This document shows, piece after piece, positions 30,934-42,840 of a DNA stretch of 64,000 bases (position 1 is the stretch's first letter; every line of letters starts with the position of its first letter). A program made the position numbers and the translations under genes. Location of the stretch: the NCBI RefSeq assembly GCF_032062105.1, contig NW_026936980.1, positions 620,001 to 684,000 on the forward strand, read 5' to 3'. The notes beneath the pieces were generated by a model. The model had not been told where the DNA came from and did no database searches. It saw only the letters and a list, made by a program, of their open reading frames with translations. Origin of the DNA: Saccostrea cucullata (taxonomy: Eukaryota).

Positions 30934-32633
30934 ATGACGCATTCAGTTTACATCATCAGTTTCCTTATTGTGTTGTGTTTTCTTTTAGGCCTACAAGGTA
31001 TGTTGAACCATTCTTTAAAAGAATTCACAATCTATGTTAAACGTGGTTCAGAGCATGATTGGACGCATGTACACCACATGAGGGATATCGATGCATGTAT
31101 TAGGCAAACAAGGAATAGGGCCTACCGTTACATGTATTTAAATAGCCTAAGCTCGAAAATCCATCTTTGGGAGATAGATCTGCATTGCAACTTCCATGGT
31201 CCTGTGTCGCAGTAGGTGCTCGTCCTTTGTGTGAGACCTTCCCGACAAGTTTTTATTGGTTGGAGTTGACTGTAGGACTTTCATATTTCACATGTGTAGC
31301 CTAGTTCAATGTTGTGACAAGACATCTCTTTGGGTACCAAAATATTTGACATCTTGATCTTGAAGCTTAACACATTTTTTAAAAAAAATTACCAAAGTTT
31401 ATTCTTGTCCATACCGGAGCTAGTGTTTTCTTATTTCATATTAAGCGTTTTCCTCAATAAAAGACATTCAAATATGTTTTATCTCATTACCTTGACCTTG
31501 CTGCAGAACTGTAGCCATTGTGCTTTTATAGGCCTATTATATAGCCTATATATATATATAAAATTTTCAAACTTTAGTCATAGCCATAACTTTTCAGTTT
31601 GAAAAGTTGGTGCTAGGCTAGGGCTTTCGTACTTTACACATGTATTCACTGTGACAAGACCTTTAATTGGGTGTATTTTTTTTTTATCTTTTGACCTTGA
31701 ACTTAGAGTTTGACCCACTTTTAAAATAATTTAACCTTGACCATTACTTTTGAATCGTTAGTACTAGGGCTTTCATACTTCACGGGTGTTTACACCGTGT
31801 CAAGACATTCCTTTTGATACCAAGAGTTTGACCCCCACAAAAAAACTTGAACATTGAACATAAATTTTTGACCGTTACGGTTAGTACTAGGGCTTCCATA
31901 TTTCACAGGTGTATTCCTTGTGATAAGACCTTCCTTTGGGTACCAACAATTTTGACCTTTTGAACTTGACCTTGAAGTTTAACTTGCATTTGAGAAATTT
32001 CAACCCACGCCAAAATTTCGACCCTCGCCACAAGCTGTTTGAATGGTTATGGCAAGGCATTTGTATTCCTTATGACAAGACGTTTTATTGGCATCGACTT
32101 TGACATTTGATTTACATTGAAAAAATAGTCTTTGTAATGAAAGGCACATTTTGTTCTTTATGGAAATAGACAGATGTGTAGCGGCGCCCATTTTGAATTC
32201 TACCCTTAGCCGGACGGGACGTCACAAACGCTGGGAAGATGAAGCATACGACGACTACAGCGGGGGTGAAATTGATTACAAAGAGGAGGTACGTAAATTA
32301 TATCTAATATACTCCACTCTCCTATAGCTTGTGTGGAATTGACTTTGTCATATTTGAAGAACAGGTATACTAATTTACTTGTATTGTAGCAGTTGGAGGA
32401 CAGCTCTTGGTGAGTTGTGCTGTTGGAGGAATGCAAGGGTCTTGTTCTGTTATTTGTTCAAGAAAACTAAAAAAAGCAACTGAAATTTAAACACAATCAC
32501 ATTTAAAATTTCCTTTTAGACTAAGGCCGATTTCAAATGACTTTCAATACGGTATAGACTATTAGTATAGTAGACAGGGGGTGCTTAAATTGCTCTTCCA
32601 TGGAATCTGATCTTATATCAATTTTTTTAACGT

Positions 32634-32668
<35 letters not shown>

Positions 32669-33470
32669 ATTAGATTATACTATGATAATTCTTTCGTTTT
32701 TTTTTTTAAATTATTTTTTTAAATTCTGATTTATAAATTTGTTATTTTCTTTAAAACCACTTTTCCTACAGGTTTGGTCCCATAGTTAAAAAAAAATGCC
32801 ACAAAGGGTTTACTGCTGTTGCTTTAGTTTCAAGTGCAATCTCTTTCGTTCTTTGCAAATAGTTCAAACCAGTTTTTAAAGCTTCAGCACCATCGGATAC
32901 TTCTGGTTATGGTTTGGAGACATAATGTTGTGTAATGGAATTCCGCAATAAGCATTATTTTATTTTCTATTTTATGTGACAGACGGAAGAGGAGGCCAGA
33001 ATTAAGAACTTATTATTAAACTGGGAGAAGCTGGCACTCAAAGCCATCTTTGGTCTCTCCTTCTTCTCGCTGATCTGCATGGTGTGGTACATCTGTTGTA
33101 AGAACTGCTGTAGATATCTGGTGGTGGGCCCTTTGAAGGAGGCCTTTATCGACTATTGGACAAGATTTTGTCCTTGCTGCGTGAAGGACAAACGTAAGAT
33201 ATTCCCATTTTTGCTGCAAATTAATGAATAAAAAATAATATAATGCAAATACATCTACCACTAAATCATCAATTAAATCTCATGTTGTTTTCTGCAAGTT
33301 ATTTTATGTATGTCTTTGTCTTTTATACAGAGTTTCATAGAATGAAAGTTCAAGCCGAGAAGTTTGGCCTGAAGCTAACCCCCTCAACATTCGCTCAACT
33401 GAGGCGCGTGGCGGAACAGGCTGCGGAAACGATGGGGTACGACACCTCAAATCAACCCGCTTACATGTGA
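30934..33470 (+). CDS. Uncharacterised type-I single-pass membrane protein (177 aa); exons 30934-30997, 32170-32288, 32983-33193, 33331-33470
   Basis: GT-AG joins give 534 nt in frame: signal-like MTHSVYIISFLIVLCFLLGLQDRCVAA, RHKR site, acidic WEDEAYDDYSGGEIDYKEETEEE, TM ALKAIFGLSFFSLICMVWYI, Cys clusters CCKNCC and CPCC, tail ending NQPAYM*. Confidence 0.8.
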
Positions 33471-34977
33471 GGGTCCAAAACAACGCACAGATACTGGGAA
33501 GCTTGGAAGAATTCCGAAACAATGGACAGATGCTTGTAATTTCTGTAGGATCCAGTCCCGGTCTTATTTTTACAAAGTGAACAGGCATTTTTTGTCTTAT
33601 TTCGAGGTGCACACAAAGTTGTGCAGAATGTTCATCGATAAAAAGTGGGAAATTGGACCTTTTATTTATTTCATTAATACTTGATATGGCGAACATCAAC
33701 TTTTTGACATATGTATACATATTCTGGAGAAAAAATATATCACTGTATATTGAAAACACTTCTGGTCTTTGAAAGCAGTACATGTACTATAGTATGTATT
33801 AGTTTTGTAGAACGGAAGGAAATAAATATAACTGTTAAATGTACCAGTAATAAAATTAATGATGTAGAAATCGATATAATCTAAATCCCCGTATAGCTTT
33901 GAAACGCAGTGGTGAAATTAGAGAAAAATCTTCTGAATTTGCTCTAAGTACATGTAGGTTGTTGTTTTATGCTCTTGTAATCGAAAATTTGGTTCTTTGG
34001 ATATAAATATATTTGACCTTGGAGTTTGACCCACTTTTTGCAAAATTTAACTTTGGTAATAACTTTTAAAAAGTTGATGCTAGGACTTTCTTACTCCACA
34101 TGGGACAAGGCTTTCTTCGGATATCAACAACTTTGACCTTGACCTTAGAGTGTGACCTCCTTTTGAAAAACTTTAACCTTGACCATAACCTTTGAACAGT
34201 TGGTGCTAGGACCTTAATATTTCACATGTGCATTTCTTATAGCAAGATCTTTCCCCAGGTATCTTTGACCTTGACCTTAGAGTTTGACCCACATTAAAAA
34301 ATAACTTTGGCATATCTTTTGAATGGTTGGTGCTTTGGATTTCATATTTCAGAGGTATATCATTGATACACGTCCTTTTTTTAATAACAACACTTTTGAT
34401 CTCTTTACCTTGGAGTTTGACTTGTATTTTAGAAACTTTAACCTTCGCCAAAGCTGCCAAACGGGAACATCAGTGTTACAAACACGTATTGTTTCCTGTG
34501 ATAATGTTCTATTACAGTTTACATTTTATTTTGAACTGAGTTTTTCACCCGTCACATTAAAAGAAAAGTTTAATGCACAAATATGTAGTCTAAATAAGAA
34601 AAATCACAAAAATGTACATGAAGTAAACATTCACAATATATTGAATTTATTGAATAAACGCAAGCCTTTATCAGCTAGATCCCTGTACATGTTTCATGTG
34701 AATCTGGAAAACTTATCATGTACCGACATCACTGTTGGTGTTATCAGGACCGTCCTGTGCATACCGAGAGCCGCGTGATTACTACTGCGTTATAATATGG
34801 ACGGTCAATAGAAGCTTCCGTGTTACTAAAACAGAAGATGATTCAAATGGATTTTAACAACATTGAAAACATTTGATTTATTTATCGGCATCAATAATTC
34901 AATGGTATATATAATGTTTTTGATGGACACGTAACTTGGTCATTTCAATGTTTAAAGCCACGGCTGGATGTGTGTAT

Positions 34978-37900
34978 ATGGGTGTCTCGGCGTCAAACTC
35001 TGGAGACCGTGATAAACAATTGGTACCAAAAGTCAAAATTGCTCTAGTAGGTACTTATGCTGTTGGAAAAACATCCATAATAACGAGATACATCCGGGAA
35101 ACGTTTTCTTCTGAGTACATATACACGAGAGGTAAGATAACACAGATGATAAAGGACTAAGTGGAAAACCTTGTTGCAGTCCTTCACTCTATGAACTTTT
35201 TCAGATTATTCAATGACAAACAAAAGGCACTCTCCTGACTCACAATGGCTGCTCTAATGGCTACTGTATTTAATGAGCACTTTTTTCTCTATACATTACT
35301 AAATAAGATGCTTTATCTTGAATTTTAATTATATAGTGGTTCTTGAATTTTTTTTAAAAAGATGCCATTATATCGCAGTTCTTGAATTTTTTTTTTAAAA
35401 GATGCCATTATTATGGAATCTGGATAGGGCCATGCAGTTCACTATAGCAAAATCGAAGTTTGGGTTGATAATGCGATGACGATGAAGCAATGGTGCGATA
35501 ACGATGAAGTTATGTTGCGGTATTGCGATAACGATGAAGTGATGGCGCGATAATGCGATGGCGATGGTGCGATAGCACGATGAAGCGATGGTGCGATAAC
35601 ACGATGTTGCGATAGTGATGGCACGATGGTAGGATGACGATGAAGCAATATTCACTTTTACTCTATCGTTCTATCGCACCATCGTCATCGCTTGATCGCA
35701 TCATTGTCATCGCGCTATCGCACCATAGCTCCATCGTCATCGCATCATCGTTATCGCATCATCGCATTATCGTGCCATCGACCTATTAGTCGATACTCGA
35801 TGGTGCGATAGTGAACTGCATGGCCCTATCCGGATTCCATACATTATATTTCACTTATTCTTAATTATCTCACCTCCAAAGATTTCGATCGTGGTTCTTC
35901 ATTTGAATACTAGTAAATTGAATAGAAAAAGCTTTCAAATGAAAACTTTTAAAAAAATTTCAGAAGGTGGATATAATACAATTATTGTTGGTTTGTTTTG
36001 ATGTCAACTCGATGCTTTAGCCATCTTCGAAGTACAGTTCTTCCATTGTTTTATTTGCTGGGATGTTAAGGTTCATAACTGTGAGGTGGGGCTGCCGCTT
36101 TCATTGAACACACGTTCATTAAGATTGTTTGCGCATTAATGAGAGTGAGAGTCATGTGCAAATAAAAAAAACTTTAAAAACTACAATATATTATACTTTC
36201 TGGATTTCAGGGGGAAATATACACAAGAAATTCATAACAGTTTATGGACAGAAACTCCAGATAGAGCTAATGTAAGGTCTTTGTTATGTCGAAGTCATTC
36301 AACATCTATATGTTTTCAATCATGCAGAAAAGTTTCTATATCGTAACTTGATTTATATTTTCATTTATACAGAGATACTGGTGGACAGGATTATCAAAAA
36401 GAAATAGCACCGACTTTGTATAAAGTAGCACAAGTATGTATTTATTTCTAATCAAATGAAATCATTGCTGCATATTCTGAAACATTTTATGAATATTTAT
36501 TATCTGTATCTAATGGTGTCACATTCCTACAAAAAAATCCAACAAAACAACCCTAAAATCATCAAATTCTGAAATTTGCATTTATGATTTATATCTAGAT
36601 TAAGATTTAGATTATGATACACGCTTTAATTTATATTTATGCTATAGTACATGTACATATTTAATAAAATACTCAATATATAGAGAACAGTATTCGAGCT
36701 TAAAAGTCAATATTCAAACAAAACAAATCAGGAGCAAAGCAAACCTGGGCCTCTAAAACATCAGAGGTGGGATCAGGTGCCAGGAAGGAGTGAGCATCCC
36801 CTGCCGACCGGTCATACCCGCTATGTACTCCCTGTCATTATCGGAAAATAAGGGGAAATCTGTAGACAACTAAGTGTGTAAATAATAGCCTTACATTTTG
36901 TTTCATCAACTTGTTTGTCAATACTCTAATTGACCTGGTTAAAGAAGTTGTTCATACCTTGAGCATACTCTTGTCGCATGCGTATCGAATTAAATGAGAT
37001 ATATAAAGCTCTATGTGTAGATGATAAGTAAGATATAAGTAAGGAAAGTTGATGATTAACATCAGGTACCATGGAGGAGTGAGCATCCCCTTTCGTCAAG
37101 TCACATCCGCCGTGTGCTCGATCTTAAATACTTTTTTTATATAAAAAGTTATCTTTATTGTCAACTTGTTTATAAAATAAATTTATACGTAAACCATATT
37201 TAATACTTACCATACGTTTCGACGAAATTTAGATGTTCGCTAAATGTTCTATATTTCGAACTATAAGTTGTTATTCCACCATGGTTTTCCGTTTTGTATT
37301 ATGTTCTTGCCGACTACACGATATTTTATTCTACAGGGAGTCTTAATTGTACACGACATATCGAAACCCAGCAGTTTTGAGGATGTGGAGGAATGGTTAA
37401 CAAGTATTCGCCAGGTAAACGTTATCAGTAGTCATTTCGCCATCATCACTTTGCACTCTGTGTGTTATTTTAAAAAGCCAATGGACGCTTACAGTTATTT
37501 TATTCTTTCTTTACACACAGTAGACGAAATGCATATTCTGTCATTCAATATATTTTAAATACCATCCTTTAAAAAAAACTTAATATTCTTCCATAGAAAA
37601 CTCTTGGAGACCCGGTGATAATGTTAATTGGTAATAAAAACGACTTAGATCCGCTTGGGAAAACTGATGATCCTCCCGCAACAAACAAGAATCTCACCAC
37701 CGGACTTGCTCGAGTTTCTTATGAACAATGTGAAGAGGTATTTTATACATTCTGATGACGTAATGTTTTCAGTACTCAAATCATTGCATCCTTTAGACAG
37801 TTTGCCATTGCATTCTTTAGAAAGTTTGTTATTGCATTCTTAAAACAATCTGCCATTGCATTCTTTAGACAGTTTATCATTGCATTATTTAGACAGTTTG

Positions 37901-39464
37901 TTATTGCATTCTCTACACAGTTTTGTATATTGCAATCTTTAGACAGTTTGTCATTGCATTCGATCGTTAGACAGTTTGTCATTGCATGCATTAGACATTT
38001 TGTTACTGCATGCTTTAAACAGTTTGACATTGCATTCTTTAAGCAGTTTGCCATTGCATTCTTTAGACAGTTATTACATTCTTTCGACAGTGTGTTATTG
38101 CATTCTTTAGAGAGTTCTTGTTATTGCATACTTTAGACAGTATGTTATTGCATTCTTTAGACAGTTTTTTTTATTGCATTCTATTGCATTCTTTAGACAG
38201 TCTGTTATTGCATTCTTTAGACAGTTTGTTATTGCATTCTTTAGACAGTTTGGGGTATTGCATTCTTTAGAACGTTTTTGTTATTGCATTCTTAAGAAAT
38301 TTTCTCTTGTATTCTCTAGACATTTTTATTGCATTCTTTAAACAGTCTGTTATTGCATTCTTTAAACAGTTTGTTATTGCATTCTTCAGACAGTTTGTTG
38401 TTGCATTGCTTAGACAGTTTATCATTGCATTCTTTAGAGAGTTTGTTATTGCATTCTTTGGGGGGTTGTTATTGCATTCTTCAGACAGTCTTTTATTGCA
38501 TTCTTTAGACAGTTTATCAATTCATTCTTTAGACAGTTTATCATTGCATTCTTTAGATAGTTTATCATTGCATTCTTTAGACAGTTTATCATTGCATTCT
38601 TTAGACAGTTTGCATTCTTTACACAGTTTGTTCTTGCTCGCTTTAGACAGTTTGTTATTACATTCATGAACAGTTTTCATTTCTTCCTTTAACAGTTTGT
38701 TAATGCATTCCTCTGACAACATTACATTGCTTTTCCCTAACTGTTTGACATTAGATATGTAAGATAATTTTATTTGCAATCCTCTAATGGATTGCCAATC
38801 CATTCCTTTTATATTCTGTTAAATTGTACACATAGTGACAGATAGTCAACGTATTCCTTCGACAGTCTTTAATTGTATTGCTCTAAAAAAAAATTTTTCT
38901 TTGCATTTCTCAGAGTTTGTTCTTTCCATTAATGGCATTGTTTACCACTCCAGTTTGTCATTGCACACCTCGAAATGAAGAGAGAAATTCTTAACTTTTC
39001 AAAAAAATATTTTATATGTAGTACATTTTGTATTCTCTGTCAGAAGGTACACCAGGAGGGGTTACTTCCCTTTTACAGTGAGGTCAGTGCCAAGACCGGT
39101 ATGAACATAGACCCCGTGTTTGAGCTCCTGGTTAAAGAAATTCTCCATAAACAAAATCGCCTTCTGGGCACTATCTGGGAGCCAGACCTCGGAAAGGTAC
39201 ATCTAATAGTCAGCAGAAAATTGTACGCTAGTTATAATCGGTTCAATGATATCAGAATGAAGTTAAAAGTAATATGATACTTTTGATTTACTACTTATCG
39301 CAAAACATTAAATCTAATTATAACTCCATATATTTTACTACATATATTGTATGTTGATAAATATTGATTAAAATTACCATAATCATATTTTTTTAAAGGT
39401 TGACGATGGAAGATCTGCTGCAGAAAAACCTACCTCCAAATCTTTGACCTGCACGATCTTATAG
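34978..39464 (+). CDS. Highly diverged Rab8-derived small GTPase (237 aa); exons 34978-35131, 36211-36271, 36373-36433, 37337-37414, 37597-37737, 39044-39196, 39399-39464
   Basis: G1 GTYAVGKT, G3 DTGGQ, G4 GNKND, G5 EVSAK, CTIL* end; 714 nt in frame. Exon sizes 61/61/78 and phases 1,2,0,0,0,0 match Rab8 in this window. An upstream in-frame ATG exists at 34948. Confidence 0.88.
35412..35841. mobile_element. Fold-back MITE with TAT...ATA termini and 6-bp TSD (IS3EU-like)
   Basis: TIR TATGGAATCTGGATAGGGCCATGCAGTTCACTAT / ATAGTGAACTGCATGGCCCTATCCGGATTCCATA; TSD CATTAT; GCGAT-rich left half and ATCGC-rich right half. Confidence 0.88.
36718..37120. mobile_element. Short interspersed repeat fragment with internal direct repeat
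   Basis: ATCAGGTGCCAGGAAGGAGTGAGCATCCCC at ~36772 recurs at ~37061; GC-richer than flanks. Confidence 0.45.
37783..38720 (+). repeat. ~24-bp minisatellite in intron 5 of the diverged Rab
   Basis: Unit TTATTGCATTCTTTAGACAGTTTG, roughly 35-40 degenerate copies. Confidence 0.93.
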
Positions 39465-40669
39465 CAGTGATTTACAATGAAATGAACATTGTCGTAAAAC
39501 TTACAGCAACAATAATATTAATGTGGTGAAAAAGAAACAACTGTAAACTCTTCAACTTGGCATCACTGAAAGGATTTTCATTATTCAACTTGTTGGAATA
39601 TTCAGATATGGTTACGGTGCATAATTAAACAATTATTTACCAACATTATCCATATCACAAAATGTCCAGAAATTAAGGGACCCAGTGGCGAATTGGGAAT
39701 TTGTTCTATGGAGATTCACATCGACTCTAAGACATGCCAGACTTTGATTTTTTTTTAGGTTAGGTAGAAGAAGACATATTTCTTAGTGGATTTTATTCCG
39801 AAGGATGACTTTCCTCCTCCCCCTTCCCTAAGATCCGCCCATGTGTTCTTTAATGACAATAACTAAAGTATTCCTGGTAATGCATGTGCTGTGTACTAGT
39901 AACGTGTTATTCATATACTGAACTTCTGTTTTCATTAAACAGGTCTGGATGATTTCCAAATAAGGAAGTCAAGAGTGATAACCGTGAATTGCTATAAATA
40001 ACAGAATAAACAAGGTACTAGTCCTTCTGACCAATCAGATAACGGCATTCAGACAAACCCATAAGAAAATAAATAAAACACATGGTTTTAAAGTTTTTTG
40101 CCCGAAAGATTTTTTTTAGAACAAACTCTTTGTAAACTTAATGGACATTTAGGAATAATATAATATTTATGAAAATTCTACCGTGAACAAACACAACTTG
40201 AAAGCTTAGAATACGTTTTAAGTGGGACTAAAAATCAGTCACAAGGAGGTAGCATTCCCGAAAGTTTAACTTACGTTAAAAATTTGATATAAATAAGTAA
40301 ATTTTTTCAGATTTCAGAGTTTGATATAAAAATTTTATCGAATAGATAACAGTCTTGATTATTTTTGAGTTTTTATAACAAAATCGAAATCAGTTTCTGG
40401 TATGCGAGGTAAGATATTGGGATAAAACACATTCATGTATGATTATTCTCTTTTTCTCCACGTTTTACGCCTTTCCTTATGACCATTTAAAGTTTGCATA
40501 GCTTAGTATTCGGCGCTCATGAAACCCGTGATATTTCAATGTAGTCCATACGATAAACACTTATGTGAGGTGGATATATACACATGGAAATTAAGCATCA
40601 TCGATAAAAATCGGACGGCTTAGCAAAAGAATATTTACCAGCATATAGTATATTCTGGTAAATGTTATA

Positions 40670-41475
40670 ATTATACCCCCCGCAAACGAAGTTTGGGGGT
40701 ACATGTATATTGGAATCAGCTTGTCCGTACGTCTGTCTGTCCGTCCAGCTGTGCAAACGTGTCCGGTCCATATCTTTCTTACCGAGGAACATTAGAATCT
40801 ACTTCACACAAAGATTGCTCATGACCTAAGGGTGTGTCGTGACCTTGATCCAAGGACATTTGGGGAAGTTCAAGGTCACTGGAAGAAAAATTTAATAATT
40901 CGTTTACGGTCCATATCTTTCTTATGGATAAACTTGGTAAGTTCCTATTTCACACAAAGATTCCTCATGACCTAAAGGTGTGTCATTACCTTGACCCAAG
41001 GTCATCTGTGCAAGTTCAAGGTCACTGATTTTTTTTTTATAATTCATGTTTGGTACACGTATACTTTTATTATGGAAAAACTTGAATCTACTACTTCACA
41101 CACAGATGGTTTATGACCTGAGGGTGTGTTATGACCTTGAGCCAAGGTCATTTAAGTTCAAGGTCACTGAAAGAAACAATTCATGTCCAGTCCATATCTT
41201 TCTTATGGATAAACTTGGTAAATTCCTATTTCACACAAAGATTGCTTATGAACTGAGGGTGTGTCATGACTTCCCAAGGTCATTTGTGCAAGTTCAAGGA
41301 CACAGACAGAAAAAAAGTCATAATTCATGTCTGGTCCATATCTGTCTTATGGATAAACATGGTGAGATCCCATTTTACACAAAGATTGCTTATGACCCAA
41401 GGTTGTGTCATGGCTTTGAACCAAGGTCATTTATGCAAGTTTAAGGTCACTGACAGAAAAAGTTCATAACAGTGC
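40670..41475 (+). mobile_element. Helentron-like element with degenerate tandem core
   Basis: TTATACCCCCCGCAAACGAAGTTTGGGGG hairpin head, GTCT/GTCC microsatellite, repeats of CACACAAAGATTGCTTATGACC...CAAGGTCA. Confidence 0.75.
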
Positions 41476-41478
41476 CTG

Positions 41479-41697
41479 GGGTCCGTTTTACAAAAGGACT
41501 TACGACTTAAGACCAAATTTAATTCTTCATATAACTTTTTAATTAACTTTATATCGAAAATTATTTAAAATTCTTTAAAAGGAATGTGGAAAAATATTTT
41601 TACACAACCAATTTCAAAGAGAATTATAAATTTTGCAAATTTTACAATCATCTGAAGTTTTTGGTCTTAGTCGTAAGTTCTTTTGTAAAACGGGCCC
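41479..41697. mobile_element. PIF/Harbinger-like MITE
   Basis: TIR GGGTCCGTTTTACAAAAGGACTTACGAC / GTCGTAAGTTCTTTTGTAAAACGGGCCC; 3-bp TSD CTG. Confidence 0.8.
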
Positions 41698-42462
41698 CTG
41701 GTCTTTATCTTTTGTCTTTATTTTTTTATTAGGGTGCACCTTCGTTTCATTCATAAGAGATATAATGAGCAATTACATTTGCACTAAAAATGTTTGAGCA
41801 TTTCTCTCTCCTCTTAGATTCATAAAATATTCATGATTTGGCACCTCTGAAAAACCCAGTGGGGGTATTTTGTCCTTTTGGGACAGTTCTTGTTAAACTT
41901 GATAAGAACTTGCTGGTGTGATTTATTCCTTCGTAAACGATTACATTGTATCATGCATTTTTTTCTTTACCGAAATAAAAATATCAAGGTTGTTCACGGT
42001 AAATATGTAGGGGATACCTTATTCATCAAAAGTTTTAATCTTACTTCTAAAGATATTTTGTTAAAAAATCTTTTCGAGGAAAAAAAACAAAAGCAGGTGT
42101 TATCTTTTTTGTTCTTTTAAAAAATGAGTATGTAAAAATGCTGTTGTCTGATTGGACAGAAAAAAAATTACGTGTACATGATGTATATTTAAAGCAGCTT
42201 TCAGTTATCGTTCTTGACTTCGATATTTGGAAATCGTCCAAACCTGTTAAATGAACCCTTTCTCTTTTTCTATGAGGGTGCTTATATAGTTATAAATACC
42301 GGTATGAAAAATCGAGACTTGTTTATTAAAGAGATATATATTATATATACATGTACATGTATGTTGTTCCCCGCAAATTTTGTAATAAAACAATTTCTTT
42401 AGTATTTTTTCCTTACTTTATACACCAATGCAGTCTATGTCATTATATTATAATGACAAAAT

Positions 42463-42840
42463 CAGGGGCGTAGCAACGGGGGGGGGGGGGCAGGGGGGCC
42501 TGCCCCCCCCCCCCCCCCACTTTTTTTCACAACCTTACTTATATTATAGGAAATGTTAATTAGAAAGCCTGGTTGCCCCCCCCCCCCACTTTTAGTGATG
42601 TCTTGAAAATGTAGTATTAGAACTGGTACTCAAAGTAGTTGACACTGAGGAAAGGTTTACCCCCCCCCCCCCCCACACACACACACACACACACGAAATA
42701 GGATATTCGACTTTGGGCCATTTTTCCTTTTTTTTTTTTTTTTTTTTTGCTCGTCAACTTTTTCAGGTAAGTAAAAAGAAAAATTTCTCTGGCTGCCCCC
42801 CCCCCCCCCCCCCACTTTCAAAAACGATGCTACGCGCCTG
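42463..42840. mobile_element. MITE with CAG...CTG termini and poly-G/poly-C runs
   Basis: CAGGGGCGTAGC...GCTACGCGCCTG; 5-bp direct repeat AAAAT. Confidence 0.75.

Follow-up and report, generated by a model that had tools for sequence, protein, structure and literature searches.

A Rab8-type small GTPase gene of true oysters with a replaced partner surface and predicted lipid signals at both ends

What does a Rab become when the surface by which Rabs are recognized has been replaced, while the gene still has the exons of Rab8? The question is raised by a seven-exon gene in a 64,000-nucleotide stretch of DNA from the oyster Saccostrea cucullata (contig NW_026936980.1, positions 620,001 to 684,000 of the forward strand), here called the window; features of the window are collected in Table 1. 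An earlier note, made from the letters of this DNA, had read the gene as an inverted local duplicate of a nearby Rab8 gene with rewired switches, an insert loop, and possible lipidation of both termini. We find that the locus holds a genuine small GTPase gene, which is expressed and conserved by selection. Its product is probably a functional small GTPase confined to the Ostreidae and remodelled from a Rab8-type gene, which would be anchored by both ends and serve new partners.

When joined, the seven exons form an open frame of 714 nucleotides (nt), encoding 237 amino acids (aa) followed by TAG, and all six introns have GT..AG borders. The product carries G1 (GTYAVGKT), G3 (DTGGQ), G4 (NKND), and G5 (SAK) motifs and, besides these, keeps the switch I Thr (in YIYTRGG) and the catalytic Gln. 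RefSeq holds the same protein as XP_062585288.1, “ras-related protein Rab-13-like”; this automatic annotation begins 10 codons upstream, so that the 247-aa product consists of MFKATAGCVY followed by the 237 residues of the candidate, identical from residue 11 on. The Pfam Ras model matched an ortholog with an E value of 4e-33, and exon 1 alone matched Ras/Roc. Single-exon searches of Pfam and the PDB otherwise gave weak Ras/Rab matches only, and exon 5 searched in this way had no PDB sequence match and nothing in Pfam. With G1, the switch I Thr, a DxxGQ form of G3, G4, G5, and a modelled G-domain fold all present, the protein belongs to the Ras superfamily.

The RabF motifs, together with a hydrophobic triad, form the surface that is bound by Rab escort protein (REP), GDP dissociation inhibitor (GDI), exchange factors, and effectors. 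In the candidate, which is 32% identical to the canonical Rab8 of the same window, the positions of RabF1 to RabF4 read RGGNI, LQIELI, YQKEIA, and LYKVA, unmatched to the usual IGxDF, KLQIW, RFrsiT, and YYRGA, and RabF5 (LVYDIT, here IVHDIS) is the sole recognizable RabF motif. The Rab8 triad F45/W62/Y77 has become I55/I72/L87, and RFRTIT in switch II has become YQKEIA. Further differences from Rab8 are a Tyr in the P-loop at the position of Ras Gly12, DTGGQ in place of DTAGQ, 17 additional residues after NKND, a 10-aa N-terminal extension starting MG.S.S, and a conserved LLG.IWEPD stretch where a hypervariable tail is normal. Alignment with Rab8 and the joined frame thus bear out what the earlier note had described: its exon model, the MGVSAS start and CTIL end, the intact G1, G3, G4, and G5, the replaced RabF motifs, and the 17 extra residues. 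By its nearest relatives the protein is a Rab and by its RabF motifs it is not; likewise, its five-intron structure is that of the Rab8 subfamily and its surface for effectors, exchange factors, and GDI is not.

An AlphaFold2 model of the 247-aa product, built on a 101-sequence alignment, shows a canonical G domain with a confident core (predicted local distance difference test [pLDDT] score, >90); pLDDT falls below 50 at residues 1 to 23, 149 to 164 (the insert), and 223 to 247, in the numbering of that product. Foldseek placed Rab8a chains first (TM-score, 0.92 to 0.94), followed by Rab27a, Rab4a, Rab3B, and Rab11a (overall, 0.91 to 0.94); the matches listed are nearly all Rabs, with one KRAS. 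In a PDB sequence search the top 60 matches were all Rab or Ypt proteins and subfamily preference was unclear (Rab2A, 86 bits; Rab8A, 72 bits). The insert after G4 had been likened to that of Rho GTPases, and this comparison holds in part. Its position between NKxD, at the end of beta-5, and alpha-4 is that of the Rho insert (~13 aa); however, it is proline-rich, matches no solved structure, and in the low-confidence model forms a disordered loop rather than a Rho-type helix, and the remainder of the protein has nothing Rho-like. With a model of such low confidence, the insert may yet fold on a partner. With the Arf/Arl family the candidate shares the MG start, the D-x-G-G-Q form of G3, and a secondary Pfam Arf match (E = 1e-9). 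In contrast, the Ras/Rab model scores far higher, and the protein has a C-terminal CaaL box, a Rab8-type gene structure, and neither an amphipathic N-terminal helix nor an Arf-type interswitch.

Full-length searches were made with the product read from 34948 and with orthologs, and the exons were also searched singly. In word-based searches with one ortholog and with a profile of seven orthologs, in which the 8,000 candidates sharing the most words were scored, five clusters stood at 447 to 483 bits and the next match at 122 bits. The clusters correspond to S. cucullata, Saccostrea echinata, Ostrea edulis, Crassostrea gigas/angulata (XP_011429338, “Rab-13-like”), and Crassostrea virginica (XP_022309016 and XP_022308863, “RabC-like”). 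Because this score gap follows the five oyster clusters, the family looks restricted to the Ostreidae, or true oysters, in the database searched. A full-sensitivity search with exon 1 returned a handful of significant matches, the close ones all beginning MG.S.S; a 57-aa exon 1 homolog, which begins MGKSNS, hints at a more distant family member. The orthologs of this single family bear the name “Rab-13-like” in four of the species, and those of C. virginica are called “RabC-like.” A literature search found no paper on this oyster family or its protein accessions and no Rab survey in Crassostrea.

All five genomic orthologs have seven exons, of 154/157, 61, 61/67, 78, 141, 153/156, and 57 to 69 nt. 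In the Crassostrea orthologs, exon 3 (L041 10472-10538 and L042 10892-10958) is 67 rather than 61 nt long, which adds Val-His. Across five species and six ortholog sequences, the invariant segments of the N-terminal half are MG.S.S, GTY.VGKTSIITRYI, YIYTRGG.I, and IQIELIDTGGQ.YQK, and those of the C-terminal half are GNKNDLDP..K.D, NL..G..RV, EVSAKTG, ELLVKEILH.Q..LLG.IWEPD, and C.IL. The C termini read CTIL (in three), CIIL/CVIL, and CIIL, giving the consensus C[TIV]IL, a CaaL motif of the type used by geranylgeranyltransferase I (GGTase-I). Of 95 more distant homologs in the alignment, none has any of the derived residues Y27, R51, G53, N54, I72, G75, Y79, or Q80, and one has I55.

The predicted N-terminal signal depends on where translation begins. 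In S. cucullata, 34948 is the sole in-frame ATG upstream of 34978, and RefSeq reads the protein from there; for S. echinata, O. edulis, C. gigas, and C. virginica, the annotated protein begins at the MG codon. Among the five oyster species compared, an ATG at −30 is present only in the two Saccostrea species, between which 4 of the 10 upstream residues differ, versus 10% over the remaining protein. In O. edulis, C. angulata/gigas, and C. virginica, the frame upstream of the MG codon holds a stop codon or has no ATG. Neither ATG has a purine at −3, and G at +4 is found only at 34978. Because the −30 ATG is Saccostrea specific, its codons diverge, and the other oysters have no in-frame ATG, comparison of the species indicates that 34978 is the ancestral, conserved start, the one that the earlier note had preferred and marked for checking. 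The same note had seen the MGxxxS myristoylation consensus in MGVSAS; the pattern G-{EDRKHPFYW}-x(2)-[STAGCN]-{P} fits GVSASN, GASVSN, GASTST, GASESK, and GSSASK in the five species, at the motif level only.

Three other features upstream of the gene were considered. A TATA-like element at 34906-34914 was set aside as a sign of transcription starting just before 34948; the 5′ leader of a C. gigas mRNA contig is at least 172 nt long. Reads at 34320-34370 were rejected as an upstream 5′ exon; their loose ends match a diverged repeat copy and show no splice. A bacterial promoter scan of the upstream region was empty and is irrelevant to the gene.

How might such a protein be held at a membrane? 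Translation would start at the conserved MG.S.S, and Gly2 would then be N-myristoylated. Myristate alone gives weak membrane binding, and a second signal is required. At the other end, Cys234 of the C[TIV]IL box would be geranylgeranylated by GGTase-I without REP, so that the membrane would hold the protein by both ends. CaaX boxes ending in Leu are substrates of GGTase-I, and RabGGTase needs REP (PMC5902221). Since RabF1 to RabF4 and the F/W/Y triad have been replaced by residues that are themselves conserved, the loss of REP, GDI, and the Rab8 partners is likely; the protein most likely no longer uses the exchange factors and effectors of Rab8 either and would have partners of its own. The conserved Tyr at the Ras Gly12 position may slow hydrolysis assisted by GTPase-activating proteins. 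A further step, which we put forward tentatively, is that the protein, with a lipid at each end, entirely dispenses with REP and GDI, leaving a switch that would be regulated by nucleotide only or be locked in the GTP form through the P-loop Tyr.

We know of no small GTPase described with an N-terminal myristate and C-terminal geranylgeranyl pair. The nearest parallels are plant ARA6/RabF1 and Plasmodium Rab5B (PfRab5B), which are likewise Rab derived and have an N-terminal MG extension fitting the N-myristoyltransferase consensus. ARA6 is without a C-terminal prenylation motif and carries N-terminal palmitoylation. N-myristoylated Rabs are found in the literature; for the one checked, PfRab5B, the published report describes an N-myristoylated protein without a C-terminal prenylation motif and with palmitoylation of the N terminus added (PMC3912013). 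Unlike both, the oyster protein lacks a Cys at its N terminus and retains a CaaL box at the other end, and it appears to derive from Rab8 rather than Rab5.

It is possible, though we doubt it, that the protein is an ordinary prenylated Rab-like protein, in which MG.S.S is unmyristoylated or has another role and a single geranylgeranyl group supports the usual membrane cycling, perhaps with GDI. The PROSITE-type pattern for myristoylation is short and has little predictive power, the first 23 residues of the 247-aa model are disordered, and the distant homolog beginning MGKSNS has at position 3 a Lys that the pattern excludes; the upstream ATG of both Saccostrea species and the CaaL end of canonical Rab8 fit this explanation as well. 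However, Gly2, Ser4, and Ser6 are invariant across the five species and six sequences while the following 10 residues vary freely, in-frame upstream ATGs are confined to two of the five species, and the RabF motifs replaced here are by established knowledge the contacts for REP and GDI.

Several points weigh against the reading that we prefer, a remodelled GTPase anchored at both ends. Lipid modification, membrane association, nucleotide binding, and partners are all predicted from sequence or model. Canonical Rab8 uses GDI despite its CaaL end, and for that reason a CaaL box alone does not imply GDI independence. If the ATG 30 nt upstream were used in the Saccostrea species, Gly2 would be buried; the S. 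cucullata reads do not fix the transcription start, so translation may also start at 34948 there, and the C. gigas leader carries several upstream ATGs, out of frame. The second half of switch II reads KLVLGFFTKAQVH in Crassostrea versus EIAPTLYKVAQ in Saccostrea and Ostrea, a sharp difference between genera, and this surface is therefore not uniformly constrained. To these are added two points on ancestry, the fragment-based tree and the limited adjacency to Rab8, which are taken up with the evidence for the parent gene.

That evidence lies chiefly in the introns. In a pairwise MAFFT alignment of the candidate and Rab8, introns 1 to 5 fall in the same columns and in the same phases (1, 2, 0, 0, and 0). 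Intron 6 has a common phase, but its position lies in an unalignable tail. The internal exons of 61, 61, and 78 nt and the single-Cys CaaL end, CTIL in both, are also shared. The match of six introns claimed earlier is thus upheld for phase throughout and for position in five. The specificity of the pattern was judged by searching the genome with the 20-aa exon 3 of Rab8 and inspecting about 20 distinct Rab loci, among which a 61-nt exon 3 with a phase 2 intron in the Trp codon and a phase 0 intron after YYRGAM occurs only in Rab8 and the candidate. Rab10 has introns 1, 2, and 4 of Rab8's five, with exons 3 and 4 fused, and in Rab1, a Rab35-like gene, Rab18, and Rab3 the introns differ in position or phase. 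The gene structure therefore points to the lineage of Rab8 and Rab10, in the group that also includes Rab13 and Sec4, and more narrowly to Rab8: both genes have the five G-domain introns, and the pattern is specific among the Rab loci inspected. The Rab8a chains that head the structural matches and the RefSeq name Rab-13-like agree with this parentage, which the earlier note had proposed.

It is improbable that the parent was a Rab other than Rab8, for example the RabX1-like neighbor, with the Rab8-like gene structure being ancestral or convergent. In a maximum-likelihood tree of 19 rows by 170 columns, whose 13 paralog rows are tblastn fragments from 3-kb loci mapped onto Rab8 coordinates, the oyster clade had 100/100 support and was placed next to RabX1-like, with weak support (78/65), rather than with Rab8. 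The RabX1-like gene is also an upstream neighbor of the candidate in both S. cucullata and O. edulis, as Rab8 is not, and Rab2A, Rab35, and Sec4 lie slightly above Rab8A by PDB sequence score. However, the RabX1-like gene has an intron within the P-loop and another following RFRSM, and it lacks introns both between W and D and between G4 and G5. Of the five introns common to Rab8 and the candidate, four could be placed in this comparison, and the RabX1-like gene shares none of them; descent from it was rejected on these intron positions, and the remaining Rabs differ in their introns as described above. The approximately unbiased test on the same fragment-based tree did not reject grouping the candidate with Rab8 or with Rab8 and Rab10 (P = 0.215), and long-branch artefacts are likely because the stem of the clade measures 1.9 substitutions per site. 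The sequence tree speaks neither for nor against descent from Rab8, and the intron map is the better marker.

Whether the duplication was local, as had been proposed, is a separate matter. Adjacency to Rab8 was seen only in S. cucullata; the 10 kb preceding the candidate contain no exon of Rab8 in O. edulis, C. angulata, C. virginica, or S. echinata, and in S. echinata this flank extends only to a small neighboring gene. The order in O. edulis is the 3′ end of the RabX1-like gene, a 169-aa gene, and the candidate, and C. angulata and C. virginica have different upstream neighbors. Descent from Rab8 stands on the introns, and the local part of the claim does not find support in the other oysters; a local inverted duplication is a possible origin. 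The distribution of orthologs indicates a duplication older than the divergence of Crassostrea, Saccostrea, and Ostrea, making the gene old and not a recent local duplicate. The small gene, which has no Pfam domain, lies between Rab8 and the candidate in the window (30934-33470). It has been conserved as the immediate upstream neighbor in O. edulis (169 aa) and S. echinata (175 aa), the loci being L010 6286-8615 and L011 1-1326.

Three oligo-dT RNA-seq runs labelled S. cucullata were aligned to 34300-39900. The reads show five of the six junctions (36271>36373, 36433>37337, 37414>37597, 37737>39044, and 39196>39399), the exon 2-3 junction being supported by reads of three runs. Read depth is low, with only a few reads in exon 1 and the exon 1-2 junction below the listing threshold; a spliced mRNA contig of C. 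gigas confirms the corresponding junction, and full-length spliced transcripts of the C. gigas ortholog are present in hundreds of assembled contigs. Reads and reference differ at 20 coding positions (14 synonymous and 6 nonsynonymous), and within the G domain at 11 synonymous and 2 nonsynonymous positions. The pairwise ratio of nonsynonymous to synonymous rates (dN/dS) is 0.12 between S. cucullata and S. echinata (dS, 0.38) and 0.13 between S. cucullata and O. edulis (dS, 1.04), with dS unsaturated. The candidate is under purifying selection. The gene is thus expressed and spliced, and its expression, a dN/dS of ~0.12, and the derived motifs invariant among oyster orthologs favor the neofunctionalization that had been suggested over decay.

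A collinear copy of window positions 28944-42847, with ~92% identity, lies at G000:C19605:64631-78347 and is interrupted by stop codons and frameshifts. Most of its differences from the window are indels of 1 nt in homopolymers, and collinearity extends over 14 kb, including introns; on these grounds its interpretation as a paralog or pseudogene was rejected. Other Rab loci, in four pairs, are doubled in the 1.17-Gb assembly too, and we read the copy as an unpolished haplotig in an uncollapsed assembly. That the candidate itself is a decaying duplicate or a gene-prediction artefact, as the damaged copy and the low expression in three runs might suggest, can be dismissed as very improbable given an intact frame in the window, splicing as modelled, variants biased to synonymous sites, dN/dS of ~0.12 across genera, and the many full-length C. 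gigas transcripts.

Table 1. Positions in the window of the candidate gene, its parts, and neighboring genes
Feature	Position	Strand	Description
Candidate small GTPase gene	34978-39464	+	Seven exons, 237 aa, S. cucullata
In-frame upstream ATG	34948-34950	+	30 nt before conserved start; RefSeq start; weak context (T at −3, T at +4)
Exon 1	34978-35131	+	Conserved start, MGVSAS, variable linker, P-loop GTYAVGKTS, switch I up to YIYTR; ends in phase 1
Exon 2, 61 nt	36211-36271	+	GGNIHKKFITVYGQKLQIEL(I); position of RabF1 and RabF2 motifs
Exon 3, 61 nt	36373-36433	+	DTGGQDYQKEIAPTLYKVAQ; G3 motif and switch II
Exon 4, 78 nt	37337-37414	+	Beta-4 and alpha-3 (GVLIVHDISKPSSFEDVEEWLTSIRQ)
Exon 5, 141 nt	37597-37737	+	G4 motif GNKND, then ~17-aa insert (DPLGKTDDPPATNKNLTTGLARV)
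Minisatellite, 24-nt unit (TCATTGCATTCTTTAGACAGTTTG), ~38 copies	37781-38710	+	Most of intron 5; noncoding, no RNA cover
Exon 6, 153 nt	39044-39196	+	G5 motif EVSAKTG, alpha-5, conserved LLG.IWEPD stretch
Exon 7	39399-39464	+	Variable tail, CaaL box CTIL, stop codon TAG
Canonical Rab8 gene	27113-21779	-	207 aa, ends CTIL; inferred parental type; head-to-head, ~7.9 kb from candidate start
Rab8 exons	27113-26990, 25341-25281, 25163-25103, 24326-24249, 24108-24019, 23746-23630, 21870-21779	-	Seven exons
RabX1-like neighbor	~10.2-16.5 kb	+	Upstream of candidate

Two introns of the candidate hold further features. The segment 35412-35841 of intron 1 resembles a foldback element or a miniature inverted-repeat transposable element, with 45-nt terminal inverted repeats that are 91% complementary and internal GCGATGA-type repeats, themselves palindromic. 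At 36731-37104, two short intronic segments have an RNA depth far above that of the exons in all runs, very high in run X1, and many of the reads have loose ends; we take these segments to be a highly repeated transcribed element, such as a short interspersed nuclear element, and no part of the gene itself.

The search for Rab loci also brought up two other arrangements. Three divergent Rab-like exons (AGQERYRSLT.SYYRG..) lie within ~37 kb at G000:C11637:295226-331942 and may represent another oyster-specific tandem expansion of Rab-like genes. At G000:C21301:715666-716143, two versions of a Rab26/37-like switch II exon (ERFRSITRAYYRDAN and ERFRSVTHAYYRDAH) lie 421 nt apart, each followed by a donor site, and look like mutually exclusive alternative exons.

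For the annotation of oyster genomes, the conserved MG start at 34978 corrects the RefSeq start codon of S. cucullata, and the names “Rab-13-like” and “RabC-like” mislead, as both stand for a single family of orthologs. For the biology of Rabs, the identity of a member is a conserved surface read by REP, GDI, exchange factors, and effectors, and here a probable descendant of Rab8 rewrote that surface, which was then held by purifying selection across the oyster family, with a predicted myristoylation signal gained and the CaaL box kept. Should the protein indeed carry both lipids, it would offer a natural test of how a Rab-type switch fares once extraction from the membrane is impossible, and it would exemplify a trafficking or signalling component specific to oysters.

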